IMG/VR virus record: IMGVR_UViG_3300042907_001080
Location: 62,001-126,000 of that record
Direction: 5' to 3' (one strand)
Length of the DNA: 64,000 nucleotides
Position 1 is the first letter of the stretch. Each line of letters opens with the position of its first letter. The position numbers and the translations under genes are program-made. The notes under the pieces are model-generated. The model did no database searches, was not told where the DNA came from, and worked only from the letters and a program-made list of their open reading frames with translations. Shown piece by piece: positions 2,757-64,000 of this stretch.

Positions 2757-3423
2757 AGACTTTTTTGAAAAAAACAAATACTTAGTATTAAGATCCGCAA
2801 TCTCCACGGAACTAAGAGATTTTGTCACTCAATATGCTCTGTTTGATGAAATGCAAGATTTCACTCCGGAAAAAGCCTTAATGGGCGACGGAGCTCAGTG
2901 TGCTGAAGCTCATTCAAAATACTGTGATCCTGCAATGGAAAGCATGTTGTTGCATCTGCAACCTGTGCTAGAACAAGCAGTGGGTTTTTCTCTGTTTCCA
3001 ACTTATTGCTATTATAGAGTTTATAGAAACGGTGACACACTTACTCCCCATGTAGATAGGCCTAGTTGTGAAATTTCTGCAACTCTGTGTTTCAATTTCA
3101 ATTACGATGCTGACAAAGTTTGGTCAATATATATGGATGGTAATCGAGTGGATCTACTACCCGGTGACCTAGCAATTTATCGAGGATGTGATGTGCCTCA
3201 TTGGCGCGAACCTTTCGACAAAGGTCAAGATGCTTGGCAAGTGCAGGCTTTCTTTCATTATGTAGATGCTCATGGACCAAATGCAGAATGGAAATGGGAC
3301 AAACGTGATTCTTTGGGCATGCTAGGCACCGTCCCTAGTCTAGAACTTCTAAAAGAATATAAAACATCTACTAAACCCGGTGATGCTGTGGCTGAGAAAT
3401 CCTATATCCAATACACCAAATGA
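2746..3423 (+). CDS. 2OG-Fe(II) oxygenase-like protein
   Basis: PTYCYYRVYRNGDTLTPHVDRPSCEISATL...GD..IYRGC.V.HWR...QAFFHYV. Start moved to ATG 2746 because AGGAG lies at 2735-2739. Confidence 0.85.
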   Translation: MENKDFFEKNKYLVLRSAISTELRDFVTQYALFDEMQDFTPEKALMGDGAQCAEAHSKYCDPAMESMLLHLQPVLEQAVGFSLFPTYCYYRVYRNGDTLTPHVDRPSCEISATLCFNFNYDADKVWSIYMDGNRVDLLPGDLAIYRGCDVPHWREPFDKGQDAWQVQAFFHYVDAHGPNAEWKWDKRDSLGMLGTVPSLELLKEYKTSTKPGDAVAEKSYIQYTK

Positions 3424-30894: not shown

Positions 30895-32601
30895 TTACTG
30901 AACTGGTGCTTCTGGTGCTGCTTCTGCCCCGGCATCTGCGCCTGGCTCTGCGGCAGCTGCCATATCTAAAGGTGCTTCTGCTTCTTGAGTTCCAACATCT
31001 GCAGCCATGCCTCCTGGTGTTACACCTATGCCTCTCAACTGACTCTGTGCATCGGCAGGTGCTTTGATATTAGAACCGTTTTCCTCACGCCACAGTTTTT
31101 CATTTTCTTTGATCTCATCTTCAGTCATGCCTAAGAATCGTTTCATGGCAAAACGCTTGCTGAGATGCGGAATCTGTACCACCTGTGAAAATGTAGCTGC
31201 TCTAGCTGTGTCTAATTCACTTTGACGATAAGCAGCAAAATTCTGCGGCTGATTGAATTTAAGTTCAAACAGTCCACTATCAATGTTTACACCTTGATCA
31301 TTAAGCCACAGCTTGAATTCAAGATCAAATGTTTCTACTATAATACTCTGTAGACGTTTGCAGTATTCGTTAAATCTCAATTCTTGTATGTAAGCTGTGC
31401 CTACTTTGCCGTCTGATACAGTGTTGGCTTGCTCGTCGATAGCTGTGGGCAAATAGCTAGCAGGGATGCGAAGAGCCCTAAACAGTTTGTTAGTAAAATA
31501 ACGTAAATCTGTAATTTCGCCAAGATTTGTACCTCCAGGCAATGTTTCTACTTTTGATCCACGACCTTCGGCGGTCTGTGGGAAGAAGTAGTCTTCGTTT
31601 ACACTTAGTGGATTATAACTAGCGTCTATGACATTTGCTCCGCCACCCGTTGATGAAGGAATACGTCGTTGTTGAATTTCATTTTTAACACGTTCAACAA
31701 AGCTCATAGCCATGTGTGCCGGCATATTTCCAACGTCTACATAGAAAATTCGTCTTTCTGGAGCACGTTGTATACGATAGATAATAATAGCATCTTCAAG
31801 CAATTCTTTCTGCTTGTAGACTTTGAACACTGATTCTAATAGACTATTACCAAAAGGATAGTTATTATCTAGTCCTTCTGACAATGAAATATGAATAACA
31901 TGTTTGGCATCCACTGTTATTTCATTGGTCTGATTACTGAATCTTGTGCCTACTGAACGTGCTGCATCACCTGCAAAGCCGCGGGCAAAACCACCACCTG
32001 TCTGATATGAACTAGTACCACTTGGAGCTGTGTTTGTGGTATTTTGTGGTGTGGTAGCTATGAATTCTTTGAAGTTGAAGTTGATATCACGGATCACATA
32101 CTGCTCGGGAATCTTGCCTTCTGATTCGTTAACAATTATCTTAGTGACTTTAGAAGCATCCACAAACAACCATTTTTTGGTTTCTGGATCACGAATAAAA
32201 AAGCAGTCTCCGTATTTGAATGCGTTGCGTAGTATGCGGAAGATTCTGGTTTCAAAGCTGTTCTGTTTGCACCACTTCTGTAGGCTGTCTTTGAGTATCT
32301 TGACTTCAGTGGCAGTGGGCTCACCACGGAAAAATGTATGAAACGGTGTGGCGTTTTCTTTGTCTTTTTGTGTACAGAATTCTGTGAGTATGTCCAAAGC
32401 AGCATTGACTTCCGAGTCCATGTCCATGGTATCATACTGCATGTATCGTTCTACACGATTGGGACTACCTGCGTAAACATCTGGTAGATAGCTGGAATAA
32501 TTAGCACGAGCAGGACCTGGACGGCCGCGACCACTGATTGGACTCATAGAGCCGCTGGTGTTATCTATGTTAACAGGGGTAAAGTATTTTTTCCAGCTCA
32601 T
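30895..32601 (-). CDS. gp20: portal vertex protein (gp20-like)
   Basis: LEDAIIIYRI.RAPERRIFYVDVGNMP..A..F, EDYFFP...EGRG.KVETLPGG.NLGEI.D..YF..KL.RAL.IP. Confidence 0.96.
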   Translation of the reverse strand: MSWKKYFTPVNIDNTSGSMSPISGRGRPGPARANYSSYLPDVYAGSPNRVERYMQYDTMDMDSEVNAALDILTEFCTQKDKENATPFHTFFRGEPTATEVKILKDSLQKWCKQNSFETRIFRILRNAFKYGDCFFIRDPETKKWLFVDASKVTKIIVNESEGKIPEQYVIRDINFNFKEFIATTPQNTTNTAPSGTSSYQTGGGFARGFAGDAARSVGTRFSNQTNEITVDAKHVIHISLSEGLDNNYPFGNSLLESVFKVYKQKELLEDAIIIYRIQRAPERRIFYVDVGNMPAHMAMSFVERVKNEIQQRRIPSSTGGGANVIDASYNPLSVNEDYFFPQTAEGRGSKVETLPGGTNLGEITDLRYFTNKLFRALRIPASYLPTAIDEQANTVSDGKVGTAYIQELRFNEYCKRLQSIIVETFDLEFKLWLNDQGVNIDSGLFELKFNQPQNFAAYRQSELDTARAATFSQVVQIPHLSKRFAMKRFLGMTEDEIKENEKLWREENGSNIKAPADAQSQLRGIGVTPGGMAADVGTQEAEAPLDMAAAAEPGADAGAEAAPEAPVQ

Positions 32602-35564
32602 GCTTTGTATAGATTCTTGTTAAGGCCTTTTGTAGCCATTACATTTTCATAAGTGTTTGTAGTGGTCTGCGCCTGCAGTTTTATTAATTGTGCCATCTTA
32701 GTATTTAACTCCGCGAGCAGTGTAGAAGGTGATTCTTGAGATTTTTTATCTTGTTCTTGTTTTTCTTTAGCTGCCGCTTCTTCTTTAGCTTTGGCTTCTG
32801 CATCTGTTTTGGCTTTGGCATCTGCTTCTTGTTTTTTCTTTTCGGCATCTGCTTCAAGAGCTTTTTTGCCTGCGTCAGTTTGTGTGGTAGGTTGAGGTTT
32901 AGCTGATGCTGGGACCGCTGGTTTATCTGTAGGAGCTGTGGTAGGTTGAGGTTTAGCTGGTGCTGGGACTGCCGCTTTTTCCTTAGCTTCTGCATCGGCT
33001 TTTTCGTTGCCAGACTTTTCAAAATCTTTAATTATTTGTTGTTTTTCTGCTTCTTTTTGAGCCTTTTCTGCTTTAGTAAGTGCTTCTAATTTCTTTTCGG
33101 CTGCTTCAACTTTTTCAATAGCTGCTTTCTTTTCAGCTGTGGTTTTGGCTTCTGTTAGTTCTTTGTTAGCAGCATCTTTTTCTTTGCCAATTTCCTGTTT
33201 TTTAATTCCAATTTCTACAGCGCCGCCTTGCTTACCGCTGAACTGTTTCAACAGTTCTTCTGGTCCTGCACTGTAGTCTAATAATTTTTCTTGAGCCTTT
33301 ACCGCAGCTTCTTTGGCTTCTGCTTCTTTTTTTGCTCCGGTTGTGAGTCTATCATGGGTAAGTTTCTTTTCTTTAAATTGAGCTTCGTCTTTTTTCAAAC
33401 CGGTTATCTGTGCTTTAGTCAGTTCGTCATTGTTGGTTTTACGCAATGCTCTTTCTTCAGCTCGATCTTTTTTACGCTGATCGGATTGTTCTTTACGTTC
33501 GGCATATTCTTTTTCACTGATACCTGCTAGGCCTTTAGTTAATTTTCCTATAGCAAATAAAATTTGATCCATTAAATCATCAAAGAATGATCCCACATCT
33601 TGAATAATATCCATAAATTTTGCCAAGCCATTAATCACGTCCTTGACAACCGTCCACATACCACCAAGTATAGCTACCACTGCTTTGATAATTGGAGTGA
33701 ACATAAAATCGAACACTTTAATTAGCACTCCTACAGCCGTACCTAGCACTTGGAACGCTTCTCCTACAAATGCACCTACTTTAATTAATATCTCACCGAA
33801 CCCTCCTGTGCTTTCTGAAACTCCAAATATGTTGCTCATTAATTCTTTCAAAGGTTGAATGATCTGCATCACGCCATTATACAATCCGTCAAAGGCCAAT
33901 ATAGCTCCCCTAACTAAACCGCCTAGAACCGGAAACACAGCATTCATAATACCGTCAATGAATTCGACTGTACCGCCTAACCCCGAAGCACCAAATTTTT
34001 CACTGAGGTAATCTATCACAGGAGCCAACAATAGACTCATGCCTTCCCATATCTTCATGGCCACCGACACTACAAGGTTAAAAGCAGGTACCAAATATTT
34101 TTCTGCGAGATTAGCCACTGTGCCAAACGCACTGATTAGGTAGTCTAATATGCCACTGTTAGCCAACAGCATCTTGAATTTGTTACCTACTTCTGCGATT
34201 GCAGCCTGGAACTGCTGCATCTTTTGATTCATCTTGTCTGTTTCAGCAGCTGCTTTTTTCTGTTCTTCTGTGGCTTCTAGTAGAGAATCTTTGTTTAGAG
34301 ACTGAGTAGCAGCTAAAGAATTTGTCAATCCTGCTAGCTCAGAATTGGCTGCTGCTGCAGATTTGATATTTTGAAGATTTTTTCCACCTTCAGACTTCAT
34401 CATGTTGTTAAGAGCGTTGCGTTCTTCCAAGGTCACTGCCTCGCCACGCTGCATCTTTTGATTCATTCTCTGCAGCATAGCTGCGCTTTGAGGCATCATT
34501 GCCATGAGCTTTTGATTTTCTTCTGTGGTTGCTGTGCCAGTGGCCATGATGTCTTTGGCAAAATTTTTCAGTCCAGTATCTTGCAATCCATCAGTTACCG
34601 ACATGAAACTGTTTCTTACACCTTCACCTAACCCTTGCATAGATGCTTGAAACTGTGCATCTTTAGCCATCGCTTCTCTTGATTTTTCTATATCGGCTCT
34701 TGATTGTCCAGTGACTTTTGCTAATAGATCCATCTCTTTAAGATAACTTTTTGCACCTTGTGCCAATTCTGCATTGGACTTCTTACCTTGCAGACCTTGA
34801 GCCTTCATCAATGCACCGTAACTAGCTAATCCTTGATTGATATCTTGTGTGCTGAATCCCAACGCATATAATTCACTGCTGGTACTACGTAGTTGTTTTG
34901 ACACTCGAGCAAAATTACTTGCACCACCTTCTGTAGTGGTTCCAAAAGCAGTCATAGCATTACTGTTCTTCTGAATCATAGATCCAAACTCTGCCATAGA
35001 CATACCTGCTTGAGAAGCAGCTGTGGCAAAATTACTAATACTGCCTCCAAATGTAGCACCGGTCTGTGACACAGCTACAAACGATTTAGTTACGTCATCA
35101 GCTGCACCTGCTACTGCACTAAACAGCTTGCCGAATATCGGAATACTGCTGAACATTTGTGCTGCACCAGTAGCACTTCCGTCCAATCTTGACAATGATT
35201 CTACTGCTCCTGTCACAGTATCACTAAATTTTACATAGGCGCCAGCTGTCTGTATAGCAGTATCTTTAAGTTTGCCTATGCCAACCACAGCCATACCGGC
35301 CATGAATCCTACACCTTTAAAAGATTTACTGACCGCAGCAGAAGCAAGTCCTAACGCACCGCCACCTCCTGCTCCGCCGCCACCTGCTCCGCCGCCACCT
35401 GCTCTACTACCTGCTGCGCCACCACCTGCTGCGCCACCACCTGCTGCGCCACCACGGCCACCACCGCTACTCATTACAGCAAGTATGGCCTTGAGCGTGG
35501 CTTCGGAAGCTGCATTTTGAGCTTCAACTTGGCCAATTCCTGGGATGTCGATCATTACTGCCAT
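32598..35564 (-). CDS. tape-measure-like / baseplate hub protein (988 aa)
   Basis: Long Ala/Gly-rich helical protein with a hydrophobic amphipathic mid-section, a K/E/A-rich coiled coil and a PA-rich linker; divergent from the gp26-like gene. Confidence 0.65.
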   Translation of the reverse strand: MAVMIDIPGIGQVEAQNAASEATLKAILAVMSSGGGRGGAAGGGAAGGGAAGSRAGGGGAGGGGAGGGGALGLASAAVSKSFKGVGFMAGMAVVGIGKLKDTAIQTAGAYVKFSDTVTGAVESLSRLDGSATGAAQMFSSIPIFGKLFSAVAGAADDVTKSFVAVSQTGATFGGSISNFATAASQAGMSMAEFGSMIQKNSNAMTAFGTTTEGGASNFARVSKQLRSTSSELYALGFSTQDINQGLASYGALMKAQGLQGKKSNAELAQGAKSYLKEMDLLAKVTGQSRADIEKSREAMAKDAQFQASMQGLGEGVRNSFMSVTDGLQDTGLKNFAKDIMATGTATTEENQKLMAMMPQSAAMLQRMNQKMQRGEAVTLEERNALNNMMKSEGGKNLQNIKSAAAANSELAGLTNSLAATQSLNKDSLLEATEEQKKAAAETDKMNQKMQQFQAAIAEVGNKFKMLLANSGILDYLISAFGTVANLAEKYLVPAFNLVVSVAMKIWEGMSLLLAPVIDYLSEKFGASGLGGTVEFIDGIMNAVFPVLGGLVRGAILAFDGLYNGVMQIIQPLKELMSNIFGVSESTGGFGEILIKVGAFVGEAFQVLGTAVGVLIKVFDFMFTPIIKAVVAILGGMWTVVKDVINGLAKFMDIIQDVGSFFDDLMDQILFAIGKLTKGLAGISEKEYAERKEQSDQRKKDRAEERALRKTNNDELTKAQITGLKKDEAQFKEKKLTHDRLTTGAKKEAEAKEAAVKAQEKLLDYSAGPEELLKQFSGKQGGAVEIGIKKQEIGKEKDAANKELTEAKTTAEKKAAIEKVEAAEKKLEALTKAEKAQKEAEKQQIIKDFEKSGNEKADAEAKEKAAVPAPAKPQPTTAPTDKPAVPASAKPQPTTQTDAGKKALEADAEKKKQEADAKAKTDAEAKAKEEAAAKEKQEQDKKSQESPSTLLAELNTKMAQLIKLQAQTTTNTYENVMATKGLNKNLYKA
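32883..32969. repeat. 33-bp direct repeat, 54-bp period (PA(P/S)AKPQPTT x2)
   Basis: TGTGGTAGGTTGAGGTTTAGCTG(A/G)TGCTGGGAC at 32883 and 32937. Confidence 0.85.
35368..35455. repeat. 15-bp in-frame tandem repeats encoding a Gly/Ala linker
   Basis: CCTGCTCCGCCGCCA x2 and CCTGCTGCGCCACCA x3. Confidence 0.8.
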
Positions 35565-35592: not shown

Positions 35593-35621
35593 TATAAATA
35601 CACTTGCGTATTATATATTTA
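35593..35621. promoter_or_regulatory. crossed divergent late promoters
   Basis: TATAAATA on plus (35593-35600) and TAAATA on minus (35616-35621) between the TMP-like and gp26-like genes. Confidence 0.6.
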
Positions 35622-35632
35622 CCGGAGATAAA

Positions 35633-36496
35633 ATGGACCAAATTCCTAATTACAGTCAGCCAAAAAAGAACCCGCTGGCCAGCTTTTATAGACAGCCAAA
35701 GATCTATGTCAAACTACCAAGCAAGGGCGAGTTCTATCCACCTGGCAGTTTGGATGTCAGTGCCAACGGAGAATATCCTGTTTATGCAATGACTGCCAAA
35801 GATGAACTACTGTTTAAAACTCCGGATGCCTTGTTAAGCGGACAAAGCACTGTGGAATTGATCAAGAGCTGTATTCCAGCGATAACCAATCCCTGGGCTA
35901 TGCCAAACATAGATCTAGACTTTGCTCTGATAGCCATACGCATTGCTACCTACGGAGACAAGATGGAAGTGGGGTGTAACTGTCCTCATTGTGAAGCTGA
36001 AAACAGCTACGACATCGATCTCACTGCTTGGTTTGGTGTGTTCAACAATTTCCAATACGAAAAAGACATACCAATAGATCAACTAACAGTGCATGTGCGT
36101 CCGTATACCTACAAAGAAGTCACAAAAACTGCAATCCAAACCATGGAGCAGCAGAGAATATTCCAGATCATCAATGATGACACCCTCACAGACGAAGTCA
36201 AACTAGAAAGATTTGGCGCTAGTTTTATCAAGCTCACAGAACTCACAGTGGATATCATTGCAGACTGTATCACTGCCATAGATGCACCAGAAGGCACTGT
36301 TACTGATCAAGCTATGATCAAAGAGTTTATTGCAAACTGTGCCAAAGATGTATTTGAAAAAATACAGAACCATGTGATACAGATGAAAGACAACATTCAG
36401 TTTGAAGCACAAAACGTTACCTGTGGAGAATGTAATAAGTCATTTAGCTTGCCTATTACAATGGATCAGGCAAATTTTTTCGCCGTAAAATCTTAA
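35633..36496 (+). CDS. gp26: baseplate hub assembly protein (gp26-like)
   Basis: NPL..F.RQPKIY..LPS.G.FY, MTAKDEL, D.D..LIAIR.ATYG, two CxxC motifs (CPHC, CGEC), C-terminal NFF. Confidence 0.75.
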   Translation: MDQIPNYSQPKKNPLASFYRQPKIYVKLPSKGEFYPPGSLDVSANGEYPVYAMTAKDELLFKTPDALLSGQSTVELIKSCIPAITNPWAMPNIDLDFALIAIRIATYGDKMEVGCNCPHCEAENSYDIDLTAWFGVFNNFQYEKDIPIDQLTVHVRPYTYKEVTKTAIQTMEQQRIFQIINDDTLTDEVKLERFGASFIKLTELTVDIIADCITAIDAPEGTVTDQAMIKEFIANCAKDVFEKIQNHVIQMKDNIQFEAQNVTCGECNKSFSLPITMDQANFFAVKS

Positions 36497-36555
36497 CGTT
36501 ATCCTTGCCGGAGATTTTACGGGAATCTGATCGCTTAGATAAAGAAGGCAAGGAT
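36472..36555 (+). promoter_or_regulatory. programmed -1 ribosomal frameshift signal (slippery site plus pseudoknot)
   Basis: In-frame A_AAT_TTT and T_TTT_TTC; stem 1 36483-93/36512-22 (11 bp), stem 2 36501-09/36547-55 (9 bp), stem 3 36525-30/36535-40; the -1 frame is open into the next ORF. Confidence 0.75.
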
Positions 36556-36708
36556 CTCAAAAAAGAATGCATGAAACTGTGTTGGTACATGCGTGGACTC
36601 AGTTTTGCTGAAGTTATGCACATGAGCTGGGACGAGCGAGAAATAATTGCAGAGATTGTTAAAGAAAATCTCGAAACTACAAGAAAAACAGGACTACCTT
36701 TCTTTTAG
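36505..36708 (+). CDS. gp51-like small baseplate assembly segment, probably the C-terminal extension of a frameshift fusion
   Basis: LCWYMRG.S..E...MS..ERE.I...KEN.E.T.K.GLPFF; TTG start with no SD; in the -1 frame relative to the upstream gene. Confidence 0.7.
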   Translation: MPEILRESDRLDKEGKDLKKECMKLCWYMRGLSFAEVMHMSWDEREIIAEIVKENLETTRKTGLPFF

Positions 36709-37130
36709 AGCGTGTTTCTATAAGACTTTAGAGCAAACAAGTCTTGACTATCAAGAGGTCTGCCTCGCAGCACTTTGTCAACGGTAGCACCTAATTCTTT
36801 ATCACTGATATCTCCACGGTAAGTTCTTAATTTTTGTAGACTTGCTGTGTCCAACGACTTGCCGGACATGGCTTGATCAATCAGGGTCTTAAGTTCTGTA
36901 GTGTCAGCGGGAGCTGCATTGGATTTGGTTTTAGATTTTTCAGTGCCGGATGGTTCAAACCATCTAGACGGAGTTAATAGCTTGTCCATCTTGTCTGCAC
37001 CTTTGTCATACTGTAGTTTAGCGTTGGTGCCATCAAGCCATTTACTAGGACTTAACACTTTGTCCATCTTAGACTTGCCTTTTTCGTAGGCCACTGGTCC
37101 AACTTCAACCACAATGTCACGTATTTTCAT
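36705..37130 (-). CDS. hypothetical protein (MKIRDIVVE; probable internal head protein)
   Basis: N-terminal M-K-I-x-D/E motif; internal duplication YEKGKSKMDKVLSPSKW / YDKGADKMDKLLTPSRW. Confidence 0.7.
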   Translation of the reverse strand: MKIRDIVVEVGPVAYEKGKSKMDKVLSPSKWLDGTNAKLQYDKGADKMDKLLTPSRWFEPSGTEKSKTKSNAAPADTTELKTLIDQAMSGKSLDTASLQKLRTYRGDISDKELGATVDKVLRGRPLDSQDLFALKSYRNTL

Positions 37131-38098
37131 TTTCTAAATACGCTGATCGTGCCTTGTGATAATCCGGTTTCAAACATTTTTTGCTTGTGCATTTCCACTC
37201 GTTGAGCCAAAGCTTCTGACAGTGTATTTCCATGATTAATCTTGCTGGCATTTTGTTGAGATAATTGATTAGCCATATTAGCCATCACTTTGTTGCCGGT
37301 GGAACTAGCAGCAGCTGCCGCTTGACGTTTTTCACGTTTACGTATAGCATTTGGTGTTTGACTTACTTGACCCGCTACTCTGCCGCCTCTTTTCTTGGTT
37401 TGAGGTTGATTGGGATTATCTGCAGCCGCGGTGTTTGTGGCACTAACTGGTGCATTGGCCATGGTGTTAGCTGGTGCTGCTGCGGCTCCCGCATCTGCCG
37501 CTGCTGCCGTTGTTGGTTCAGCAGCTGGTGCTGCTGCGGCTCCCGCTGCTGGGGGAGTTGTCGCTGCCGGTGCTGCTCCTACAGCTGGTTTAGGATCAGG
37601 TGTTGCCATCGATTTCTGCAACAACTGTAAAATTCTCTGCTTGCCTTTCTTATCTAACTTGTCTACGTTGGCTTTTACTTGTGCGTAGACTGTTTGTCCT
37701 GCTTTGGCAGTAGTCTGTTTGTCTACTGCTGCGGTTGTTTTAGCTAACGCAGCGCCAGCTGCTCCTGTTTGTGCCACAGCAGGTGCTGTACCTGTAGGAC
37801 CTTGCGCATTGATATCTTTTGCTGAAGGAGTTCCGCCACTTGGTGCTGTTGGCGCTCCACCTGCATCATACCCAGGCTGTCCTTTATTAGGATCAGGATC
37901 ATCGCCTACAAATGCTTTGCCAGCTTGATATCCTTTCTTCATAGCACGACCAGCACCTGCTACCCCACCTGCTACAGCTCCTACAGTGTTAGCTACACCA
38001 CGGGCAGCATTACCTACAACTGAACCGATCTTATTTAAAATAGGTCCTTCTTCAAGATGTTGGGTTTCTGATTCGGTTAATAGTTCATTAATTCTCAT
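37127..38098 (-). CDS. Ala/Pro-rich hypothetical protein (MRINELLTE; probable internal head protein)
   Basis: LTE/LEE protease-type motifs at the N-terminus; low complexity; late promoter ATAAATA at 38127-38133. Confidence 0.7.
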   Translation of the reverse strand: MRINELLTESETQHLEEGPILNKIGSVVGNAARGVANTVGAVAGGVAGAGRAMKKGYQAGKAFVGDDPDPNKGQPGYDAGGAPTAPSGGTPSAKDINAQGPTGTAPAVAQTGAAGAALAKTTAAVDKQTTAKAGQTVYAQVKANVDKLDKKGKQRILQLLQKSMATPDPKPAVGAAPAATTPPAAGAAAAPAAEPTTAAAADAGAAAAPANTMANAPVSATNTAAADNPNQPQTKKRGGRVAGQVSQTPNAIRKREKRQAAAAASSTGNKVMANMANQLSQQNASKINHGNTLSEALAQRVEMHKQKMFETGLSQGTISVFRK

Positions 38099-38593: not shown

Positions 38594-39028
38594 TTATTTT
38601 GCCTGAGATTGTTCTAGTAGACGCTGTCTAAGTATGTTTGATCCGCCAACTCTGACATTTATAATACCATTATAATAGTCATCAGTTTCTAAAACTCTGC
38701 GTTCAAACTGCTCTCTTGCTTCTAAATATGATAGTTCTGCCTTGGACTTGCAAAGGTAAAGTATTTCTCTTGTGAAATTTTCCGGACCTAATGTTTGGAC
38801 GTCTGCGTTTAACCTATCAGATGAACCATAGTATTCGCGCCAATCGCTTTCTACTACACTTCTTCTTTTGAGTTTTTTGCCTTTGAGTGGGGGTTTGGTA
38901 CGTTTGAATTGTGCTAATTTCTTGCCTATGTACTTCTGTCCGGTGGTTTTATTCGTGATTATATAAACAAAGCCAATATAGCCTTCTGGTATTTCGTCTA
39001 TTATTTGATTTTGAAACGTCCATTGCAC
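38594..39028 (-). CDS. GIY-YIG endonuclease (T4 Endo II/DenA- or Seg-like, catalytic domain only)
   Basis: GFVYIITNKTTGQKYIGKK, SDW..YYGSS, F.REIL, E...QF...VL....YYNG.I. Confidence 0.85.
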   Translation of the reverse strand: MQWTFQNQIIDEIPEGYIGFVYIITNKTTGQKYIGKKLAQFKRTKPPLKGKKLKRRSVVESDWREYYGSSDRLNADVQTLGPENFTREILYLCKSKAELSYLEAREQFERRVLETDDYYNGIINVRVGGSNILRQRLLEQSQAK

Positions 39029-39039
39029 TCTTTAATTAG

Positions 39040-39258
39040 TTAAAGCTTCTTGCCTCTCATGCCTTTTCTGGATTCTCGCTGTGCCTTTCGTTTATCTTGT
39101 ATTTCTACTCTTATGATTGATGCCTGTGTGCGTATTTCTGATAGCCATGATCTTGCTTTGATACCTGCTTCGTTGGATTTTTTGTGATGAAATCGATCCT
39201 GCCATTTAAAGTATTCTTGAAAGGCATGGATCATACGATCGTGTGCGTCCGAACTCAT
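39040..39258 (-). CDS. small basic protein, possibly Hc1/histone-H1-like
   Basis: K.N.AG.KAR..L.E......R.EI and a K/R-rich tail. Confidence 0.5.
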   Translation of the reverse strand: MSSDAHDRMIHAFQEYFKWQDRFHHKKSNEAGIKARSWLSEIRTQASIIRVEIQDKRKAQRESRKGMRGKKL

Positions 39259-41033
39259 GCCATAATCTCTATGTCATTGCTATAACTAGTGAATCCATTT
39301 TCTTTGATCACTTTCAGCACGTGATTAACACGACTGGTCAAATCATCTCTATGTGAAATCAAGAACACATTCTTGTCACGCTCACGAGTCATGCGTTTCA
39401 ACACAGCAATACTGGATTCAACACCACTAGCATCCATGCCCGAATCTACAAGTTCGTCGATAAACAACAAATTAATACTGGTGTATAGGTTTTCCCACAC
39501 ATCACGGAACGCCCACGACAAAGATAAGATCAATCTGTTACGTTCTCCACGGCTTAGATTGTCAAAATCTAGATCTTGTCCTAGCTGTGTGATAACCACA
39601 GTTAAATCATTCTGAAACTCCACAGTGTGAGGCAATCCGATCTTGTCCAAATAATATGTCAAACGTTGATTCAAGAACGCAAGATTCTGATCTATTATTC
39701 GTTTGCGAACAAAACTATCTTTGTTGGTCAATAACTTGTGCAAGAACTCTTGATGATCTTTAACACGCACTAGTTCGTTGAGTCCGTTCCAATCTATTTC
39801 CTGCACAGCTGTTTCTTTGAGTTCAACAATCTGATCGTCATAGGGATTTTCTTCTGCAGTCTTGATAGTAATGTCACGCTCTAGGCTGTCTAGGGTATTT
39901 TTATGGTTCAATGCTGCTTCTAAACTATCGTAGGTCACTGAAGGACACGCACCTAGTTCGCCCAGCAGCGATATTGCTTCAGTGATCACACTGAGCTCTT
40001 CGAGATGTTCGTTGATAGCGCCACGGCTTTCTTCAATCTGTGCAGACTTAGCAGACATAATTTCATTATGTTTGGCGTCGTGTAGCTCTTGGCCGCAGGT
40101 ATGACATTTGTGTTCTGTTAGACTGACTAATTCTCGTTCTAGTTTGTCTAGAATACGCTGTTCTTTTTCCAAAGCTGAAGTTTGTTTAGCACTCAGTGAT
40201 GCTAGACTCTCGTGTTCCTTTTTATTTGTATTCCAATCTGCTAATGCTCGCTGATTGACGATTTCTTGATCAATGTCAATGTCGCTGAGCCGATCAATGC
40301 TTTTGAGTAAATTAGTCAGAGCAGTTTCTTTTTGTTCTTCCCACATGCGTTGTTTGCGTATCAACGACTCTATGCTTTGTTGTATTCTTTCGTTGCTGGC
40401 TTTGACAGTTTCTATTCTTGTGTTTTCTGTTGCAATGCTGTCTTTGCTGATTCTAATTGCATCTTTAAGTGCTTCTGCCTTTTCTGACAGTATGGTAATT
40501 CCCAACAACTGTTCAATAATAGCACGTTGATCTGCAGCTTTCATGCTCAAAAAAGGTTCTGTGTAGGTGTTTAATGCAATGAGATGTTTGAACATCTCAT
40601 GTTTCATGCCAAACACTTCTTCAATGGCCTTTTGTGTTTCTCTGCTGTCGCCTTGACTTTCGTCAAGATCGCTGAGCTCTTGTTCTTGATCATTTATACT
40701 GAATCTCAGTAAATTAGGCTTGCGACCTCGCTCGATATGATACTTGACTCCATCTTTTTCAAAAGTCACTGTACACAGCATTCCTTTGCTGTTGATCTTG
40801 TTGATAAGATTATCACGTTTGATATTAGTCAGCGCCTGTCCGTAGATGGCATAACTTAATCCGTTGATAATAGTAGTCTTGCCTGTGCCATTTCTAGCAC
40901 CGCTGTCGTCACCGCCTAGGTCCATATTTTCACCTAGCACCAAGGTAAGCTGACCTTTGTCAAAATCAATGGCCTGGGTCTGATTACCCACGCTCATGAA
41001 GTTGCGCACTGTGAGATTGTTGATTTTAATCAT
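39255..41033 (-). CDS. gp46: recombination endonuclease ATPase subunit (gp46; SbcC/Rad50-like)
   Basis: NFMSVGN, Walker A NGTGKT, CHTC zinc hook, LSRGE signature, LFIDE Walker B, ISH. Confidence 0.95.
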   Translation of the reverse strand: MIKINNLTVRNFMSVGNQTQAIDFDKGQLTLVLGENMDLGGDDSGARNGTGKTTIINGLSYAIYGQALTNIKRDNLINKINSKGMLCTVTFEKDGVKYHIERGRKPNLLRFSINDQEQELSDLDESQGDSRETQKAIEEVFGMKHEMFKHLIALNTYTEPFLSMKAADQRAIIEQLLGITILSEKAEALKDAIRISKDSIATENTRIETVKASNERIQQSIESLIRKQRMWEEQKETALTNLLKSIDRLSDIDIDQEIVNQRALADWNTNKKEHESLASLSAKQTSALEKEQRILDKLERELVSLTEHKCHTCGQELHDAKHNEIMSAKSAQIEESRGAINEHLEELSVITEAISLLGELGACPSVTYDSLEAALNHKNTLDSLERDITIKTAEENPYDDQIVELKETAVQEIDWNGLNELVRVKDHQEFLHKLLTNKDSFVRKRIIDQNLAFLNQRLTYYLDKIGLPHTVEFQNDLTVVITQLGQDLDFDNLSRGERNRLILSLSWAFRDVWENLYTSINLLFIDELVDSGMDASGVESSIAVLKRMTRERDKNVFLISHRDDLTSRVNHVLKVIKENGFTSYSNDIEIMA

Positions 41034-61400: not shown

Positions 61401-64000
61401 CATTGATAGAATCTAACAAATTCCTCACATATAATTTTAAAACAATCATGCAGTCTGATACAGCGTTGTTGAATCTACAAATTAGCAACAGCTTAGAATC
61501 TCAAAGACCAATTCACAACGAATATCAACTACTTACAGAAGGCGTGGCTGATAATTTACCATCTTTAAAATTAGAAAACAAATGGATTGACAGTCTTATT
61601 GGTTCAGATATAGCAGGAAATAAAATTCCTGATATCGATCTTCCAGCTAAACAAAAATATGGTATACAATATAGACCTCGACAGACTATGTTTGTTGATA
61701 GGTTGCTGGCATTGCAAATCGTTATAGAATATATCAATGATATATTATTAAATGAAACTTTTGCAGAAACCATAGAATATACTAATTTAAATAAAGTTGA
61801 TACAGCTCCTAGTGATAAGTTGAATCTTTATGACATTGCAGTAGACACTGAAATAGAGTTACAGACAGTAGGAACAACTAATACCAAACGTGCTGTATTG
61901 CGTGGTAATTTGATCAACGGTGAATTAGACACAATAGATATAATAGATCCGGGATACGGATATAAGCCTAAAGAATTATTTGATCAAGAACAGCCCGGAA
62001 TCTATATTGGCCCTCCGGTGATTATTACCGGAGATGGTTTGAATGCCACAGCAGTGTGTCACATTGACGGTCAAGGCAGAGTAATAGCTGTGGTGGTCAC
62101 CAATCGCGGTAAAAATTACGGTGTCATCAAAGTTGATGTTAGATATTTTTCTGTTTTAGTAAACAATGATGCAACTTTAAATAATTTCTGGAGTATATAT
62201 TCTTGGGACGATCTACGTAAGACGTATTTCCGTAGTAGGTCACAGGCTTACGACACCACCAAGTATTGGAATAAAGTGGATTGGTTTAGATCCGGATATA
62301 ATGATACTCAACGTGTTGTTAAAGAGTATTCTAACATTTATGAAGTTGTAGATAGCCTTGTGACGATTGGTGACATAATCAAAGTCAAAGAATATGCTGC
62401 CGGCGGCTGGGCGAAATTCCAAAAAACTCAAGAAATAGGTCAAACGTTTTTAGACAAGTATCTATTGGTCGGTAGACAAAACGGTACAATACAATTTGAT
62501 TCTATACTATATAACACCAGTGCAGTTGGAGTAGGATTCGATAATACACAGGCGTTTGATACCACAACCTATGACATTGAAAATTCACAAGAACTTAGAA
62601 ATATTTTTGCAGCAGTAAAAGAAAATATTTTTGTAGGTGATTACGCAGTAGAATGGAACAAATTATTTTTTGCTTCAATAAGACATGTATTCAGCGAACA
62701 ACAGTATGTAGATTGGGTGTTTAAAACCAGTTTCCTAAATGCCACGCATAACATTGGCACATTAGCAAGCCCACCGAATTACAAAAATGATAATTTATCA
62801 AGTTATCAAGATTACATCAACGAAGTTAAACCATTTAGAACCACAGTTAGAGAGTATATCAGCCGTTATGATCAACCAGAATCATACGCATCGGCAGCGA
62901 TCGATTTTGATTTGCCACCGTCGTATTCAATCTTTGACGGTCGTGCCAATCCTGTTAATGCATCATCACTAGAAATATCACAGTATCCATGGAAATGGTG
63001 GGCAGATAATAAAGGCTATGCAGTCACCGCTATAGAGGTATATCAGCAGGGCACAGAATATTTAACTCCGCCTAGAGTTTTGATAGAAGGAGACGGCACC
63101 GGCGCTACTGCTAGAGCATTTATCTCGAATGGTAAAGTGGCAGGCATACAAATGTTAACTCAAGGTTCAGGATATATCAAAGCTCCGACAGTGACATTGG
63201 TAGGAGGAAATTCATCTACTGCTGTACAGGCCAAAGCCACTGCAATCATAGGAAATTCTCAAGTTCGTATGTTTGATGTTGCTTTGAAATTTGATAGACT
63301 TTCAGCTAACGGCATCTATGAAAATTTTTCGCAGACACAGACATTTATTGCCGGTGGCAGCAGTGCTGTATTCTTTTTAAATTATGCACCGACTAATGAT
63401 AAAACTCGAATCAAGGTAACTAGAAAAATATTTGCCACGCAAAAAACACAAGTTGTGTTAGCTAGTGACTATCAGGTATCTCTGTATTATCAAGCCACCG
63501 GTGGTTATAATTTGCTTCGTGGAAAACTGATATTTAATACTGCTCCGACTATAAATGATGAAATTATAGTGACTTATGACAAGAACATTTTGTTATTGGA
63601 TGCTGTAAATAGAATAGAAAAGTCCTATAACCCAAAAACAGGAATGGCAGGCAAAGAAATAAATCAACTCATGACTGGTATTGATTTTGGCGGAGTGAGA
63701 ATACAAGGCACGACATTTGATGTCACCGGTGGTTGGGATGCCTTGCCTTGGTTCACCGACAGTTGGGATTCAGTAGAGATCAGCTCAGATTATTATCACG
63801 TAGCGGACGGAAGCACCGGATCAGTGACGTTACCATATATACCAGCAGCTGGACAGCAAATCAACATATATATCAAACGTAAAAACACAAACATCACTGT
63901 GCGTATAGATGATGAAAATTACTCATCGGCACAAGATTCAAGCACAGGTGTTAATCCTGCAGCAGAAATGCCAACGTTTGTAGGTGATGGCGTAAATGCT
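52475..64000 (+). CDS. giant baseplate/virion protein (gp7-position), at least 3842 aa, 3'-partial
   Basis: TAATG overlap with the gp6 stop and SD GGAGG; begins MADNTFPKSELPIRRSVELLPTIFQT; same frame still open at the window end (...AEMPTFVGDGVNA); FG-GAP-like and W-rich repeats. Confidence 0.85.
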   Translation, partial: MADNTFPKSELPIRRSVELLPTIFQTPANDKFLSAVVDPLIQPGVLDKVVGYVGRRYDKTYNGNDVYVDTDATLRSSYQLEPGVIFKNHDKIENFYDYIDVKNQLKFFGNSIERDDKLTDQTHYTWNPPIDWDKFINYREYYWEPLGPRSINITGQSADIVSTYKVVLGTTRNSFVFSPDSYTNNPTLTLFRGQTYKFKINAPDEGFNLRTNFDSGSLLFRPNQPYRAGSFAVYDSKLWRAIRDVSVLDASSIAIDSQDWQFVESANQGAALAYDKGVTNNGIENGTLTFTVPYDAPDVLYYQSNITPDAFGRFVISDIEENTAINVELEILGKTTYTSGNAVEFSNGMIVEFDGKVTPSKYAKDLWLVEGVGTAITLTRFTDLVVPELSANVPEILFDNEGFDTQPFDDATEYAAFKDYITIARNSLDNNPWSRYNRWFHRSVLEKAYKLRGQDFPATETSRAKRPIIEFLPNLQLINHGTTAKMSVDYIDTNTADVFSTIEGSTGYSVDGEFLFNGARILVIADTDRLANNKIYTVQFITHTNSKQIHLQETEDTESILGQGVVVTRGNKNKGLMYHFNGSNWVASQRKTTVNQPPLFDVFDSDGISFGDTTTYSDTEFLGSHLLSYKPGNGRIDSELGFRLSYLNIDNIGDIEFNWNWETQTFRYSVDRKPVTQKISTGFYKLGSDVFANGWQKLNNTYIQPIIDNLIVDTATDTLTFNTVKWDNLTVDPDINFYLNGNRYLGNWTRSRNVFVFDKTFAAKDAVVIKIIADIEPDQGYYEMPIGIEKNPLNTAIQSFTLGQATNHIASAIEWDNEFIGILPGVSNLRDLQDYRYHASRFLKHSGNTPLAVMALCDKTHNIVKAIQYAEKEYTIFKNNFLQRSVEIDYNDTVNDFVDDIINSLTSVKTAQDAFADSDMIGAGAFTALTTVVEDTGIRTFSLSQPFDLTKPSSRAVYVYKNDTQLLHGVDYVFDVTFSFVKLLVTLELLDIIEIREYLSTSTNHIPPTPTSMGLYKKYTPSKFLDDTYQEPRYVIQGHDGSITAAYGDYRDDLLLELELRIYNNIKQEYDSAVFDIDQILAGYYGVGEYTKTQLDSVIVQDFLKWIQNTNINYTVNEYFDSENSFTYTYSNMSDPTKTKNIPGWWRGVYQHFYDTDRPHRCPWEMLGFSQQPDWWEAEYGAAPYTSNNLILWEDLEAGIIRQGVRAGRYDRYKRPGLSSHVPVDGDGKLLSPLDSNLAKDFSLINNRGPFVLGDVSPVEHAWRSSSEWPYAVITAMCVMKPFEYIPDNFDRSKFTKNKLDQYINSDTGLFVTISDVARHVSEANNIGLVRYLTSYIKSQGLPVDSLQKKIEKLDVALSFRMSGFVDQQQQKYLLDSKNPSAKSKSIFIPPENYDIIFNVSSPVTTVSYSGVRLEKTGGGWIVAGYDDIHPYFNYHQPQASSKDPVISVGGLSEPFTDWVEEKNYNNGVLVRYQSNFYRALKTHRSTDEFDRNQWQKLRDVPKLGAVEALRRRVFNTITVRQMSYGTLLTSIQQVVDLLLGYDSYLKTQGIVFNNYDPQNATSQDWLSAAKEFMFWTKHNWEPGAIIALSPSAQKLEINVPVGTPDNLLDGFYDYQILKGDGTVLAPRFINVNRSFQNFKLETTNTTDGIYYARLHYVIKEHVTVFDDRTVFNDIIYDKTTGYRQGRIKMQAFRTVDWDGDYTSPGFLFDNVDIQVWQPFKDYKLGDIVSYKSYSWTSLVNQLGSENFNDATWTKLDSTPVKQLVSNFDYKINQFSDYFETTSQGINQSQRELARHAIGYQQRDYLQNLAEDSVSQFQLYQGFIREKGTANSITKIFDKLSRSSAGSVTLNEEWAFRLGQVGGTDQFTEVEIQLEKAKFKLNPQLHISNLSVNSQVVDSFYRITATDFTIAPVPYTADFLPTTTQTEPLFTAGYVSAGQYQHTIRTLDDLTTLAIDTVNENDHIWVTFYQDSWQVLRVNESSLLYVVAVARPDDTIVILTLNRPHVISVDDYIGIREIANLQGFFKISAVTNTTITITVNADIDDPEIDTSTTANLQLLTVARFFDYSNIDQQAAALLKNKSLVFVDNNKNDQWEVIEKNKTYSAKNIDSIGISNPLGLGTKVIYDNANKHTIVAIPQSGFVNVYVETDTGLSLKQIIAPPVGFFETALGSFGDKIAVSPDGKYLVIGAPTASGVTSRFRGAWAVDVFYAQDDIVVYGGRLYRALNANTAVVDGSSEIAVNSDDWIPHTTVIPAQTSASDFGYYQQGMVAIYEFVGGRYVNVSAFVSPRPADNEKFGSEIAIGVNGSEYYLAVSAVGSYNNTGRVYLIKGTGTEWIHMENPLYKGIYNLSDSYKQGDIVWQAAQDPILETARGNLWQSLDGSTSDGSTITLDSQNWLKVSDISTHCSLPTNISVEDDGSTQEFTTTGLLTNTQKAELVKQGDQFGFSMAMSGDGNILVIGAPNSDGQYFANYRGLWRPDVEYVEGETVRFQGSPGTAYQYYQLGNTFDSTDSTYRSYNEDPSASVNWHQVGDSTTTPSGKIFVYKKTAYDSYEFVQMINAGTLSSFTDIDSGLVISTGDQFGFAMDLDANGNTLVVSSPRSDVNYQDQGAVYVLELDQSTTEFRVKQRLQSYEIYADEYFGFAVSVSPDSSKIAVGARNTKTPFSINFDLLEGTTFDNARTRFYIDQGFTGGVYVFDNKDQIFFLTEKLDSDLQTDESFGHSIDCIGSKILVGSPYYKNTSTKAYQGIARLFTASADASWTVLTSQRPLVDLRKIKKIELYDNVNNVKIQDIDFVDAARGKILNIAEQEIKYKTPYDPAVYSIGTAEVVVDSTINWLEKNVGKLWWNTSTAKFQYAEQKDSAYKTGNWNQQAVGSSIDVYEWVETVLLPNEWAALADTNAGLAQGVSGQPLYPNNDVYSVKFFFSPTTGLVSETLYYYWVRSKAVTPSNMPDRTKSAADVAGLIANPAGSNLAFVALIESNKFLTYNFKTIMQSDTALLNLQISNSLESQRPIHNEYQLLTEGVADNLPSLKLENKWIDSLIGSDIAGNKIPDIDLPAKQKYGIQYRPRQTMFVDRLLALQIVIEYINDILLNETFAETIEYTNLNKVDTAPSDKLNLYDIAVDTEIELQTVGTTNTKRAVLRGNLINGELDTIDIIDPGYGYKPKELFDQEQPGIYIGPPVIITGDGLNATAVCHIDGQGRVIAVVVTNRGKNYGVIKVDVRYFSVLVNNDATLNNFWSIYSWDDLRKTYFRSRSQAYDTTKYWNKVDWFRSGYNDTQRVVKEYSNIYEVVDSLVTIGDIIKVKEYAAGGWAKFQKTQEIGQTFLDKYLLVGRQNGTIQFDSILYNTSAVGVGFDNTQAFDTTTYDIENSQELRNIFAAVKENIFVGDYAVEWNKLFFASIRHVFSEQQYVDWVFKTSFLNATHNIGTLASPPNYKNDNLSSYQDYINEVKPFRTTVREYISRYDQPESYASAAIDFDLPPSYSIFDGRANPVNASSLEISQYPWKWWADNKGYAVTAIEVYQQGTEYLTPPRVLIEGDGTGATARAFISNGKVAGIQMLTQGSGYIKAPTVTLVGGNSSTAVQAKATAIIGNSQVRMFDVALKFDRLSANGIYENFSQTQTFIAGGSSAVFFLNYAPTNDKTRIKVTRKIFATQKTQVVLASDYQVSLYYQATGGYNLLRGKLIFNTAPTINDEIIVTYDKNILLLDAVNRIEKSYNPKTGMAGKEINQLMTGIDFGGVRIQGTTFDVTGGWDALPWFTDSWDSVEISSDYYHVADGSTGSVTLPYIPAAGQQINIYIKRKNTNITVRIDDENYSSAQDSSTGVNPAAEMPTFVGDGVNA

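Follow-up and report, generated by a model that had tools for sequence, protein, structure and literature searches.

A T4 gp26/gp51-family gene of a jumbo phage carries a conserved slippery heptamer and appears to encode a short and a long product by -1 frameshifting

The DNA analysed (the window) is a 64,000-nucleotide stretch, positions 62,001 to 126,000, of the IMG/VR virus record IMGVR_UViG_3300042907_001080, which comes from a freshwater (lake-water) jumbo myovirus. The 281,658-bp record contains only one gene of the Pfam family PF12322 (T4_baseplate, the T4 gp26/gp51 family). The gene and the features in and around it are as follows.

32598..35564 (-), a divergently transcribed 988-aa protein rich in Gly, Ala and coiled-coil sequence, the putative tape measure protein
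35624..35627 (+), a GGAG Shine-Dalgarno-like sequence 5 nt before the ATG of the gp26/gp51-family gene
35633..36496 (+), the zero-frame ORF of 287 aa (PF12322), the short product
36472..36478 (+), an overlapping heptamer, A_AAT_TTT, that is not conserved
36475..36481 (+), the conserved slippery heptamer T_TTT_TTC, in the zero frame (Phe282-Phe283)
36481..36708 (+), the -1 frame extension of 75 codons plus TAG, the C-terminal domain of the predicted 358-aa long product (283 + 75)
36483..36493 (+), the 5' arm of stem 1 (conserved core 36485-93)
36494..36496 (+), the zero-frame stop TAA, 4 codons after the heptamer
36501..36509 (+), the 5' arm of stem 2, lying in the loop of stem 1, pairing of which makes an H-type pseudoknot
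36512..36522 (+), the 3' arm of stem 1 (conserved core 36512-20)
36525..36540 (+), the stem 3 mini-hairpin, not supported as a conserved element
36547..36555 (+), the 3' arm of stem 2

The PF12322 match scored 69.3 bits against a cut-off of 24.5 and covered residues 47-283, and the protein also matched phrog_150 (baseplate hub). The ORF ends GCA AAT TTT TTC GCC GTA AAA TCT TAA, and the -1 frame reads RRKILTLSLPEILRESD... from 36481 and remains open to the TAG at 36706-08. The preliminary description had noted two overlapping in-frame heptamers and a downstream ORF (36505-36708) having only a TTG start, together with three RNA stems, and all of these features are present. No GGAG-like sequence precedes the TTG. 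Slippage on either heptamer would give the same peptide, ...DQANFF-RRKIL..., the predicted junction peptide being SFSLPITMDQANFFR. In the cultured jumbo phage PA5oct the corresponding shifted and unshifted peptides would be SFVVPVDFNPVSFFQR and SFVVPVDFNPVSFFR, respectively.

To test whether the site is conserved we compared homologous loci. T_TTT_TTC was found in phase in 80 of 80 metagenomic relatives (45-100% protein identity), and of 9 cultured jumbo phages of different genera, including PA5oct, RaK2 and Atu_ph07, 8 have T_TTT_TTC and one has T_TTT_TTT. A homologous -1 extension of 70-79 aa was present in each of these loci (80 of 80 and 9 of 9), and the -1 frame was open for 75-76 codons in all 76 untruncated metagenomic relatives. 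The zero-frame stop lies 1-11 codons after the heptamer in relatives. The codon preceding the heptamer Phe-Phe pair always ends in T although it encodes N, S, D, T, H, R or A. This codon is AAT in 61 of the 80 relatives and AGT, GAT or ACT in the others, and is AGT, CAT, CGT or GCT in the isolates. Hence, A_AAT_TTT is incidental to an Asn codon and only T_TTT_TTC is conserved. In the 80 loci the second Phe is always TTC, although elsewhere in these genes Phe is TTT 78% of the time, TTC makes up only 22% of Phe codons and TTT-TTC pairs are rare.

The extension behaves as a coding sequence that begins at the heptamer. Third codon positions are the most variable from the first codon after the heptamer onward, whereas no start codon is conserved, the best candidate being present in only 21 of 67 sequences. 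Gene callers begin the ORF at about a dozen different positions. Pfam and PHROGs gave nothing for the extension, and a profile of the extension searched against PDB sequences gave only coiled-coil noise. However, a profile of the extension found about 20 natural proteins of 319-351 aa having PF12322 at the N-terminus and the extension at the very C-terminus, with a junction (...F-R-N-K-I-L...) that matches the predicted ...FF-RRKIL.... In one fused homologue the extension was modelled as a confident helical domain. In all four fusion contigs examined, a short PF12322 paralogue sits immediately upstream, and two of these keep a relic in-frame T_TTT_TTC or T_TTT_TTA.

We next examined the RNA structures downstream of the heptamer. 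Stem 1 is 11 perfect pairs and its hairpin folds at -14.8 kcal/mol (z -4.1, with 0 of 200 shuffles as good). Covariation was seen at four pairs (for example AU 29 / GC 25 and GC 46 / AU 12), with a covariation score of 0.232 against 0.162 for shuffles and 0 of 500 shuffles as high. Arms from the same sequence also paired better than arms taken from different sequences (-8.8 against -5.2 kcal/mol). Stem 2 is 9 perfect pairs and, taken as a long-range hairpin, folds at -17.6 kcal/mol (z -2.6, 4 of 200 shuffles). Among 13 close relatives 5 of its 9 pairs show changes on both sides, and in a register-free test same-sequence pairing gave -11.8 against -8.7 kcal/mol for cross-sequence pairing, being better in 53 of 67 sequences. 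This signal was confined to relatives at 50% identity or more, and with a fixed register only 50% of pairs were kept across all 67 sequences, so the pseudoknot is supported only within the window's clade. Loop lengths of 7, 2 and 24 nt are sterically plausible by our reading. The third stem of the preliminary description (36525-30 with 36535-40, 6 pairs including one G-U) gave only -3.1 kcal/mol, with 59-62% of cells paired in relatives and most broken, and is not supported. The spacer from the heptamer to stem 1 is only 1 nt in the window, and 3 nt to the conserved stem core, which is shorter than the usual 5-9 nt. Moreover, the downstream structure is not universal: RaK2 showed no significant fold (z -0.35), Atu_ph07 has a different, very stable structure and RNAalifold found no consensus over all 67 aligned segments, for which reason pair counts and a register-free duplex test were used instead. 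The whole 79-nt region folded without pseudoknots gave only z -1.4, and Rfam had no family for 36300-36800.

The downstream ORF, which the preliminary description called gp51-like, is not a gp51 homologue as a whole. The upstream ORF belongs to the same Pfam family as both gp26 and gp51, although BLASTP of the N-domain against the T4 proteins gave only noise and pairwise identity is negligible. T4 has two PF12322 genes, whereas PA5oct, Atu_ph07, RaK2 and this genome have one. T4 gp26 stops just after the equivalent Phe-Phe, and in gp51 the Pfam domain ends at F200 and is followed by a tail that aligns, although only weakly, with the extension. The match is limited to the roughly 30-50-aa C-terminal tail of gp51: hhalign aligned the extension to the last 35 residues of gp51 (P 3e-4, probability 39%) and hmmsearch hit 89 of 91 gp51 homologues with scores of about 12 bits and a best P of about 1e-5, against 7e-3 for reversed decoys. 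BLASTP of the extension against gp51 found nothing, and PF28602, which gp51 homologues carry, is not recorded on the small ORFs. The two T4 genes are separate and divergently transcribed, both lie next to the operon holding the tape measure gene 29, and there is no slippery site, the gene 26 Phe-Phe being TTC TTT. T4 gene 26 also has an internal-start product, 26'. Both T4 proteins are listed as hub assembly chaperones and gp51 is absent from particles (PMC3004832).

We also asked whether the predicted fold is that of a tail assembly chaperone. When the model of the first 125 residues (pLDDT 86.6) was compared with 48,161 PDB chains, the three best matches were the three known tail assembly chaperone structures (HK97 gp13, YqbN and Rbstp2171; PMC9603447): 2ob9 at Z 6.1, 3klu at Z 5.9 and 3fgx at Z 4.9, with the next match at Z 3.4. 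These matches covered 85-92 residues of chains 96-119 residues long, and the same three were the only N-terminal matches of the full-length fused model. The predicted resemblance, which concerns the N-terminal roughly 110 residues, is modest, as rmsd is 5-8 A and Foldseek against the PDB gave no significant match for either model. A comparison with the AlphaFold Swiss-Prot library was uninformative, with no T4 gp26 or gp51 among the matches. No chaperone family appeared among the Pfam or PHROG hits, and the lambda-type chaperone family PF06894, the only chaperone family searched genome-wide, was absent from the genome.

The gene is divergent from the putative tape measure gene rather than lying between the tube and tape measure genes on the same strand, and the same divergent arrangement is seen in RaK2, PA5oct and L116. 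The tape measure assignment is itself weak, as it rests on the size and position of the 988-aa protein and a weak phrog_5448 hit (E 9e-4). The protein in the same position in RaK2 is annotated as tape-measure-like, and that in PA5oct is a virion protein by MS, whereas the PF12322 gene carries no MS note in the PA5oct record. No pairwise similarity of the 988-aa protein to either the PA5oct protein or T4 gp29 was detected.

The best explanation, in which we have good although not complete confidence, is that the single gp26/gp51-family gene is decoded in two ways. Most ribosomes would stop at TAA 36494 to give the 287-aa protein, whereas a fraction would slip back one base while two tRNA-Phe sit on U_UUU_UUC and continue in the -1 frame to 36708, to give a 358-aa protein having the same first 283 residues plus a 75-residue helical domain. 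The comparative evidence for a programmed -1 frameshift is strong, although neither the trans-frame protein nor the product ratio, which the preliminary description took to be fixed, has been measured. Slippage is probably promoted by stem 1 and, in this clade, pairing of its loop with 36547-55 would give an H-type pseudoknot. We infer that the pair is the tail or hub assembly chaperone of this phage group, with the shared N-terminal domain holding the tape measure or hub proteins and the extra domain of the long form supplying a second contact, as in lambda G/GT. T4 and some other lineages would instead make the two forms from two paralogous genes, gp26 being the short form and gp51 the long form.

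Of the alternatives, the one that remains possible, if less likely, is that the frameshift is real but the products are hub components or assembly factors with some other role, and the fold match is a chance resemblance between small alpha/beta domains. The Z scores are below the level that the aligner's own notes call safe, no sequence match to PF06894 exists in the genome, the gene order is not the canonical tube, chaperone, tape measure arrangement and some genetic studies place gp26 in the T4 hub (PMC3004832). On the other hand, the three top structural matches are all tail assembly chaperones with a clear gap to the next hit, the expression logic is that of G/GT, the gene is adjacent to the putative tape measure gene and gp51 is absent from T4 particles.

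The remaining alternatives seem very unlikely. Independent translation of the 67-aa ORF from TTG 36505, or from another internal start, would agree with the public annotations of Phosso, XaC1, XacN1, Serratia BF, Escherichia A4, Kaldavass and Atu_ph07, which call a small separate ORF there. However, the TTG is found in only 21 of 67 relatives and lacks a Shine-Dalgarno sequence, amino-acid conservation and codon periodicity begin upstream of every candidate start, PA5oct has no Met in the whole extension, the heptamer is fixed at synonymous sites and in-frame fusions exist. RNA polymerase stuttering on the T6 run is conceivable for a homopolymer, as transcriptional slippage seems to operate in some bacterial and phage genes, but six bases is short for efficient slippage, and the conserved features are the reading phase of the run and the C that follows it, which matter to tRNAs and not to the polymerase. 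A covarying hairpin also lies just downstream, and metatranscriptome contigs bridge the run without an indel, although contigs hide minor variants and may derive from DNA. A broken gene or assembly error is the most remote possibility. Homopolymers are error-prone and in-frame long versions exist in other phages, but the identical arrangement is found in 80 independent metagenome assemblies and 9 cultured, viable phages, the extension is under purifying selection and the in-frame versions belong to a lineage that has a second, short paralogue.

The slip in lambda G/GT and in the conserved tail-assembly-chaperone frameshift of long-tailed phages (Levin et al. 1993; Xu, Hendrix and Duda 2004) likewise appears to occur on an X_XXY_YYZ heptamer a few codons before the stop of a tail morphogenesis gene next to the tape measure gene, giving two products with a common N-terminal part. 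The present protein differs in belonging to PF12322, with an added domain of about 170 aa carrying two CxxC pairs, in its divergent orientation and in the downstream hairpin or pseudoknot, which lambda seems not to need. Phage P2, also contractile-tailed, probably uses a nearly identical U-rich heptamer (T_TTT_TTG) to extend its E protein by a small domain (Christie et al. 2002), but E appears to be of a different family and, at about 90 aa, smaller, and to lie between the tube and tape measure genes. E. coli dnaX would be a further -1 slip helped by a downstream stem-loop that makes two proteins with a shared N-terminus, but on A_AAA_AAG, with the shifted product the shorter one and with an upstream Shine-Dalgarno-like stimulator. 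No such stimulator is conserved here.

We found no description of this frameshift in the literature searched, and the PA5oct omics paper does not mention one. A broader hypothesis, which we regard as only somewhat more likely than not, is that the PF12322 proteins, T4 gp26 and gp51 included, are the long-missing tail assembly chaperones of T4-like and jumbo myoviruses. The ancestral state would be one gene read in two frames, and T4 and some other lineages would have replaced the frameshift by duplicating the gene into a short copy and a long copy. This would extend the conserved chaperone frameshift to the one large group of long-tailed phages thought to lack it, and would offer a role for gp26 and gp51, whose function in hub and tail assembly has been unclear for decades (PMC3004832). 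Frameshift, tandem paralogues and dispersed paralogues would then be three interchangeable encodings of the same pair of proteins, with relic slippery sites marking the transition. Hundreds of jumbo-phage genomes, including those of PA5oct, RaK2 and Atu_ph07, list the extension as an orphan 'hypothetical protein' or omit it, which one join feature would correct, and the loci provide a large natural series of U_UUU_UUC sites with varied downstream structures.

A blastn search of the locus against phage records found no match. The sequence TATAAATA lies upstream of the gene but is not enriched in the window, so we make no late-promoter claim, and no terminator-like site was found.

The gp26/gp51-type ORF of the window has its own GGAG five bases before the ATG and ends in GCA AAT TTT TTC GCC GTA AAA TCT TAA. 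It belongs to Pfam PF12322, T4_baseplate (69.3 bits against a cut-off of 24.5), and to phrog_150, baseplate hub. The features of the locus are as follows.

35633-36496, + strand: ORF of 287 aa, PF12322 family
36472-78: zero-frame heptamer A_AAT_TTT
36475-81: overlapping zero-frame heptamer T_TTT_TTC
36481 to the TAG at 36706-08: -1 frame, open for 75 codons (RRKILTLSLPEIL...GLPFF)
36505-36708: the ORF that a gene caller would list, which begins at TTG with no ribosome-binding sequence
36483-93 with 36512-22: stem 1
36501-09, in the stem 1 loop, with 36547-55: stem 2

A slip on either heptamer gives the same 358-aa product, with the junction ...DQANFF-RRKIL.... All three complementary segments listed in the preliminary description are present. 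A further in-frame slippery heptamer, A_AAA_AAG (the dnaX type), lies at 35662-35668, codons 10-12 of the same gene, but the -1 frame closes after about 7 codons and this N-terminal stretch is variable in relatives, so it is probably incidental. The T4 late-promoter consensus TATAAATA sits at 35593-35600, 33 nt upstream of the ATG, but occurs only 3 times in the 64-kb window (about 4 expected by chance) and hence is not enriched. The window lies in a 281,658-bp viral record estimated to be about 80% complete, the closest relatives of which are lake-water metagenome contigs and cultured jumbo myoviruses.

To test if the recoding site is conserved, we scanned IMG/VR twice and obtained 28 and 80 related loci spanning 45-100% protein identity (a further 500 or so exist). 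In 80 of 80 loci the two Phe codons are TTT TTC, the preceding codon ends in T (AAT 61, AGT 9, GAT 9, ACT 1), the zero frame stops 1-6 codons later and the +1 frame is short. In every locus not cut by a contig end, the -1 frame is open for 75-76 codons. Nine cultured jumbo phages of different genera (PA5oct, Atu_ph07, RaK2, Phosso, XaC1, XacN1, Serratia BF, Escherichia A4 and Kaldavass) show the same arrangement at only 25-35% identity to the window protein, with preceding codons of AGT, CAT, CGT or GCT and homologous extensions of 70-79 aa. Eight of these have T_TTT_TTC. Xanthomonas phage XacN1 (positions 1492-1498 of its locus, L119) has T_TTT_TTT and a more divergent 79-aa extension, and is the only exception to the C at position 7. 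Elsewhere in these genes Phe is TTT 78% of the time, NNT is used 59-70% of the time, and other Phe-Phe pairs are mostly TTC TTT or TTT TTT. The heptamer is therefore selected as nucleotides, not only as Phe-Phe, whereas A_AAT_TTT is incidental.

The second ORF is not an independent gene. In the -1 frame the third codon position is the most variable from the first codon after the heptamer onward, with entropies at positions 1, 2 and 3 of 1.0, 0.82 and 1.45 before the TTG that the preliminary description gave as the only start of this ORF. No ATG, GTG or TTG is conserved, and the TTG position holds a start-like codon in only 21 of 67 sequences. When 1.84 billion representative proteins were searched with a profile of the extension, the small called ORFs began at about a dozen different profile positions, and these small ORFs carry no Pfam domain and no name in 504 clusters. 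Public records annotate the stretch as a separate hypothetical ORF or leave it blank, and none annotates it as a join.

The same profile search found about 20 proteins of 319-351 aa in which the extension is the C-terminal 75 residues of a PF12322 protein. Their junction, ...D-x4-F-R-N-K-I-L-T..., is what the -1 slip predicts for the window (...DQANFF-RRKILT...). All four encoding contigs examined have a second, short PF12322 gene of 276-330 aa immediately upstream, although one of these four falls just under the Pfam cut-off. In one of the contigs, L116, the order is T4-type portal, then an 829-aa tape-measure-like gene and then, on the opposite strand, the short gene followed by the long gene. 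In the contig of NCBI assembly GCA_015689235.1 the T4-type portal gene two genes upstream of the tandem PF12322 genes (just past the 829-aa tape-measure-like gene) carries an intein (PF14890 within PF07230). The long genes have no slippery sequence at the junction. Two of the short genes (L113 1680-1704 and L114 2765-2789, in the lineage with tandem short and long paralogues) keep an in-frame T_TTT_TTC or T_TTT_TTA just before their stop with the -1 frame closed at once, and these look like relics of an ancestral frameshift site.

T4 has two PF12322 genes, 26 and 51, whereas PA5oct, Atu_ph07, RaK2 and this genome each have one. T4 gp26 (208 aa) ends ...KEFFELL, the same Phe-Phe, encoded as the non-slippery TTC TTT. 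In gp51 (249 aa) the Pfam domain ends at F200 and is followed by a 49-residue tail, which aligns with the extension around the motif M-x-P-x-E-R (hhalign P 3e-4, probability 39%). An hmmsearch hit 89 of 91 gp51 homologues, all at their C-terminal end, with a best per-sequence P of 1e-5, whereas reversed decoys reached 7e-3. This is suggestive, not conclusive. The simplest reading is one ancestral arrangement with three encodings: a frameshift, tandem genes and dispersed genes.

We next examined the RNA structure downstream of the heptamer. In the window, stem 1 folds at -14.8 kcal/mol (z -4.1). Across 67 distinct sequences its 9-bp core stays paired with many compensatory changes: pair 29/58 is AU 29, GC 25; pair 30/57 is GC 46, AU 12; and pair 27/60 is UA 27, CG 9, AU 7. 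The covariation score is 0.232 against 0.162 for shuffles, with 0 of 500 shuffles as high, and slid controls reach at most 0.158. Arms from the same sequence pair better than arms from sequences more than 25% divergent, -8.8 against -5.2 kcal/mol, in 59 of 67 sequences. Stem 2 shows changes on both sides at 5 of 9 pairs among 13 close relatives, and in a register-free test same-sequence pairing gave -11.8 against -8.7 kcal/mol for cross-sequence pairing, better in 53 of 67 sequences. However, the register drifts, only 50% of cells pair in a fixed register, and the signal vanishes in relatives below about 50% identity. Stem 3 is not conserved. The conserved parts are therefore the heptamer and, in this clade, a hairpin that may form a two-stem pseudoknot, and the three-stem pseudoknot of the preliminary description is not supported. 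The spacer of 1-3 nt is unusually short, and Rfam has no matching family. Among distant phages, Agrobacterium phage Atu_ph07 has a much stronger nested structure (-31.8 kcal/mol, z -5.9; 3323-3400 of its locus, L002), which starts 3 nt after the heptamer and is unrelated in sequence to the stems of the window. PA5oct has a hairpin 6 nt downstream (z -1.4), and RaK2 has nothing significant. Different lineages seem to have evolved different stimulators.

We also predicted the fold. A fused natural homologue (P0121) modelled with 36 aligned sequences gave pLDDT 93.9 and pTM 0.87, and in this model the extension appears as a confident helical domain. Its relatives among predicted viral structures are all phage proteins annotated as baseplate hub assembly proteins, whereas Foldseek finds no solved relative. 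By use of a search independent of Foldseek, we found that the only solved chains matching the N-terminal 90 residues are HK97 gp13 (2ob9), YqbN (3klu) and Rbstp2171 (3fgx), all three of which are described as tail assembly chaperones (PMC9603447). We then modelled the first 125 residues of the window protein itself (pLDDT 86.6). Only 24 of 48,161 chains reached Z of 2 or more, and the top three were again 2ob9 (Z 6.1, 88 of 104 residues), 3klu (Z 5.9) and 3fgx (Z 4.9). The scores are modest and the rmsd is high, but the three hits stand clear of the rest and cover whole chains. The next hit, at Z 3.4, is 5ir0_B, which is ORF19 of a Vibrio cholerae PICI-like element, a phage satellite protein of unknown function that may also be chaperone-like.

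Taken together with the two-product logic, the position next to the putative tape measure gene, the T4 literature listing gp26 and gp51 as hub assembly chaperones with gp51 absent from particles (PMC3004832), and the PA5oct record, which marks the neighbouring protein but not this one as found by virion MS, the fold matches make the G/GT analogy of the preliminary description the best current reading, although we consider it only somewhat more likely than not. The frameshift itself we consider very likely. Independent initiation, transcriptional slippage and a broken gene are each contradicted by several lines of evidence. RNA-library contigs from lake-water metatranscriptomes cross the T6 run without an indel although, being contigs, they cannot exclude minor variants. 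The main alternative concerns function, not recoding.

The mechanism class, a -1 slip in a tail chaperone gene, is well known. What appears new is its occurrence in this family, its universality in the RaK2, PA5oct and Atu_ph07-type jumbo phages and the link to the T4 26/51 pair. Full-text searches found no paper linking gp26, gp51 or PF12322 to a frameshift or to tail assembly chaperones, although most subscription journals were not covered and prior description cannot be excluded.

The neighbouring putative tape measure protein (988 aa) starts with a long run of GGGAAGGG repeats (35400-35520, - strand) and has no detectable pairwise similarity to the proteins in the same position in PA5oct or T4. 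On the other side of the gene lie the following ORFs.

36705-37130 and 37127-38098, both - strand: two convergent ORFs of 141 and 323 aa with Ala/Pro/Gly-rich low-complexity stretches and no family assignment, the 141-aa ORF overlapping the stop of the frameshift extension by 4 nt
38594-39028, - strand: ORF of 144 aa with a GIY-YIG-like N-terminus (GFVYIITNKTTGQKYIGKK)
39255-41033, - strand: 592-aa SbcC/gp46-like recombination nuclease subunit, beside the 144-aa ORF; the position of gp46 matches RaK2 and Atu_ph07
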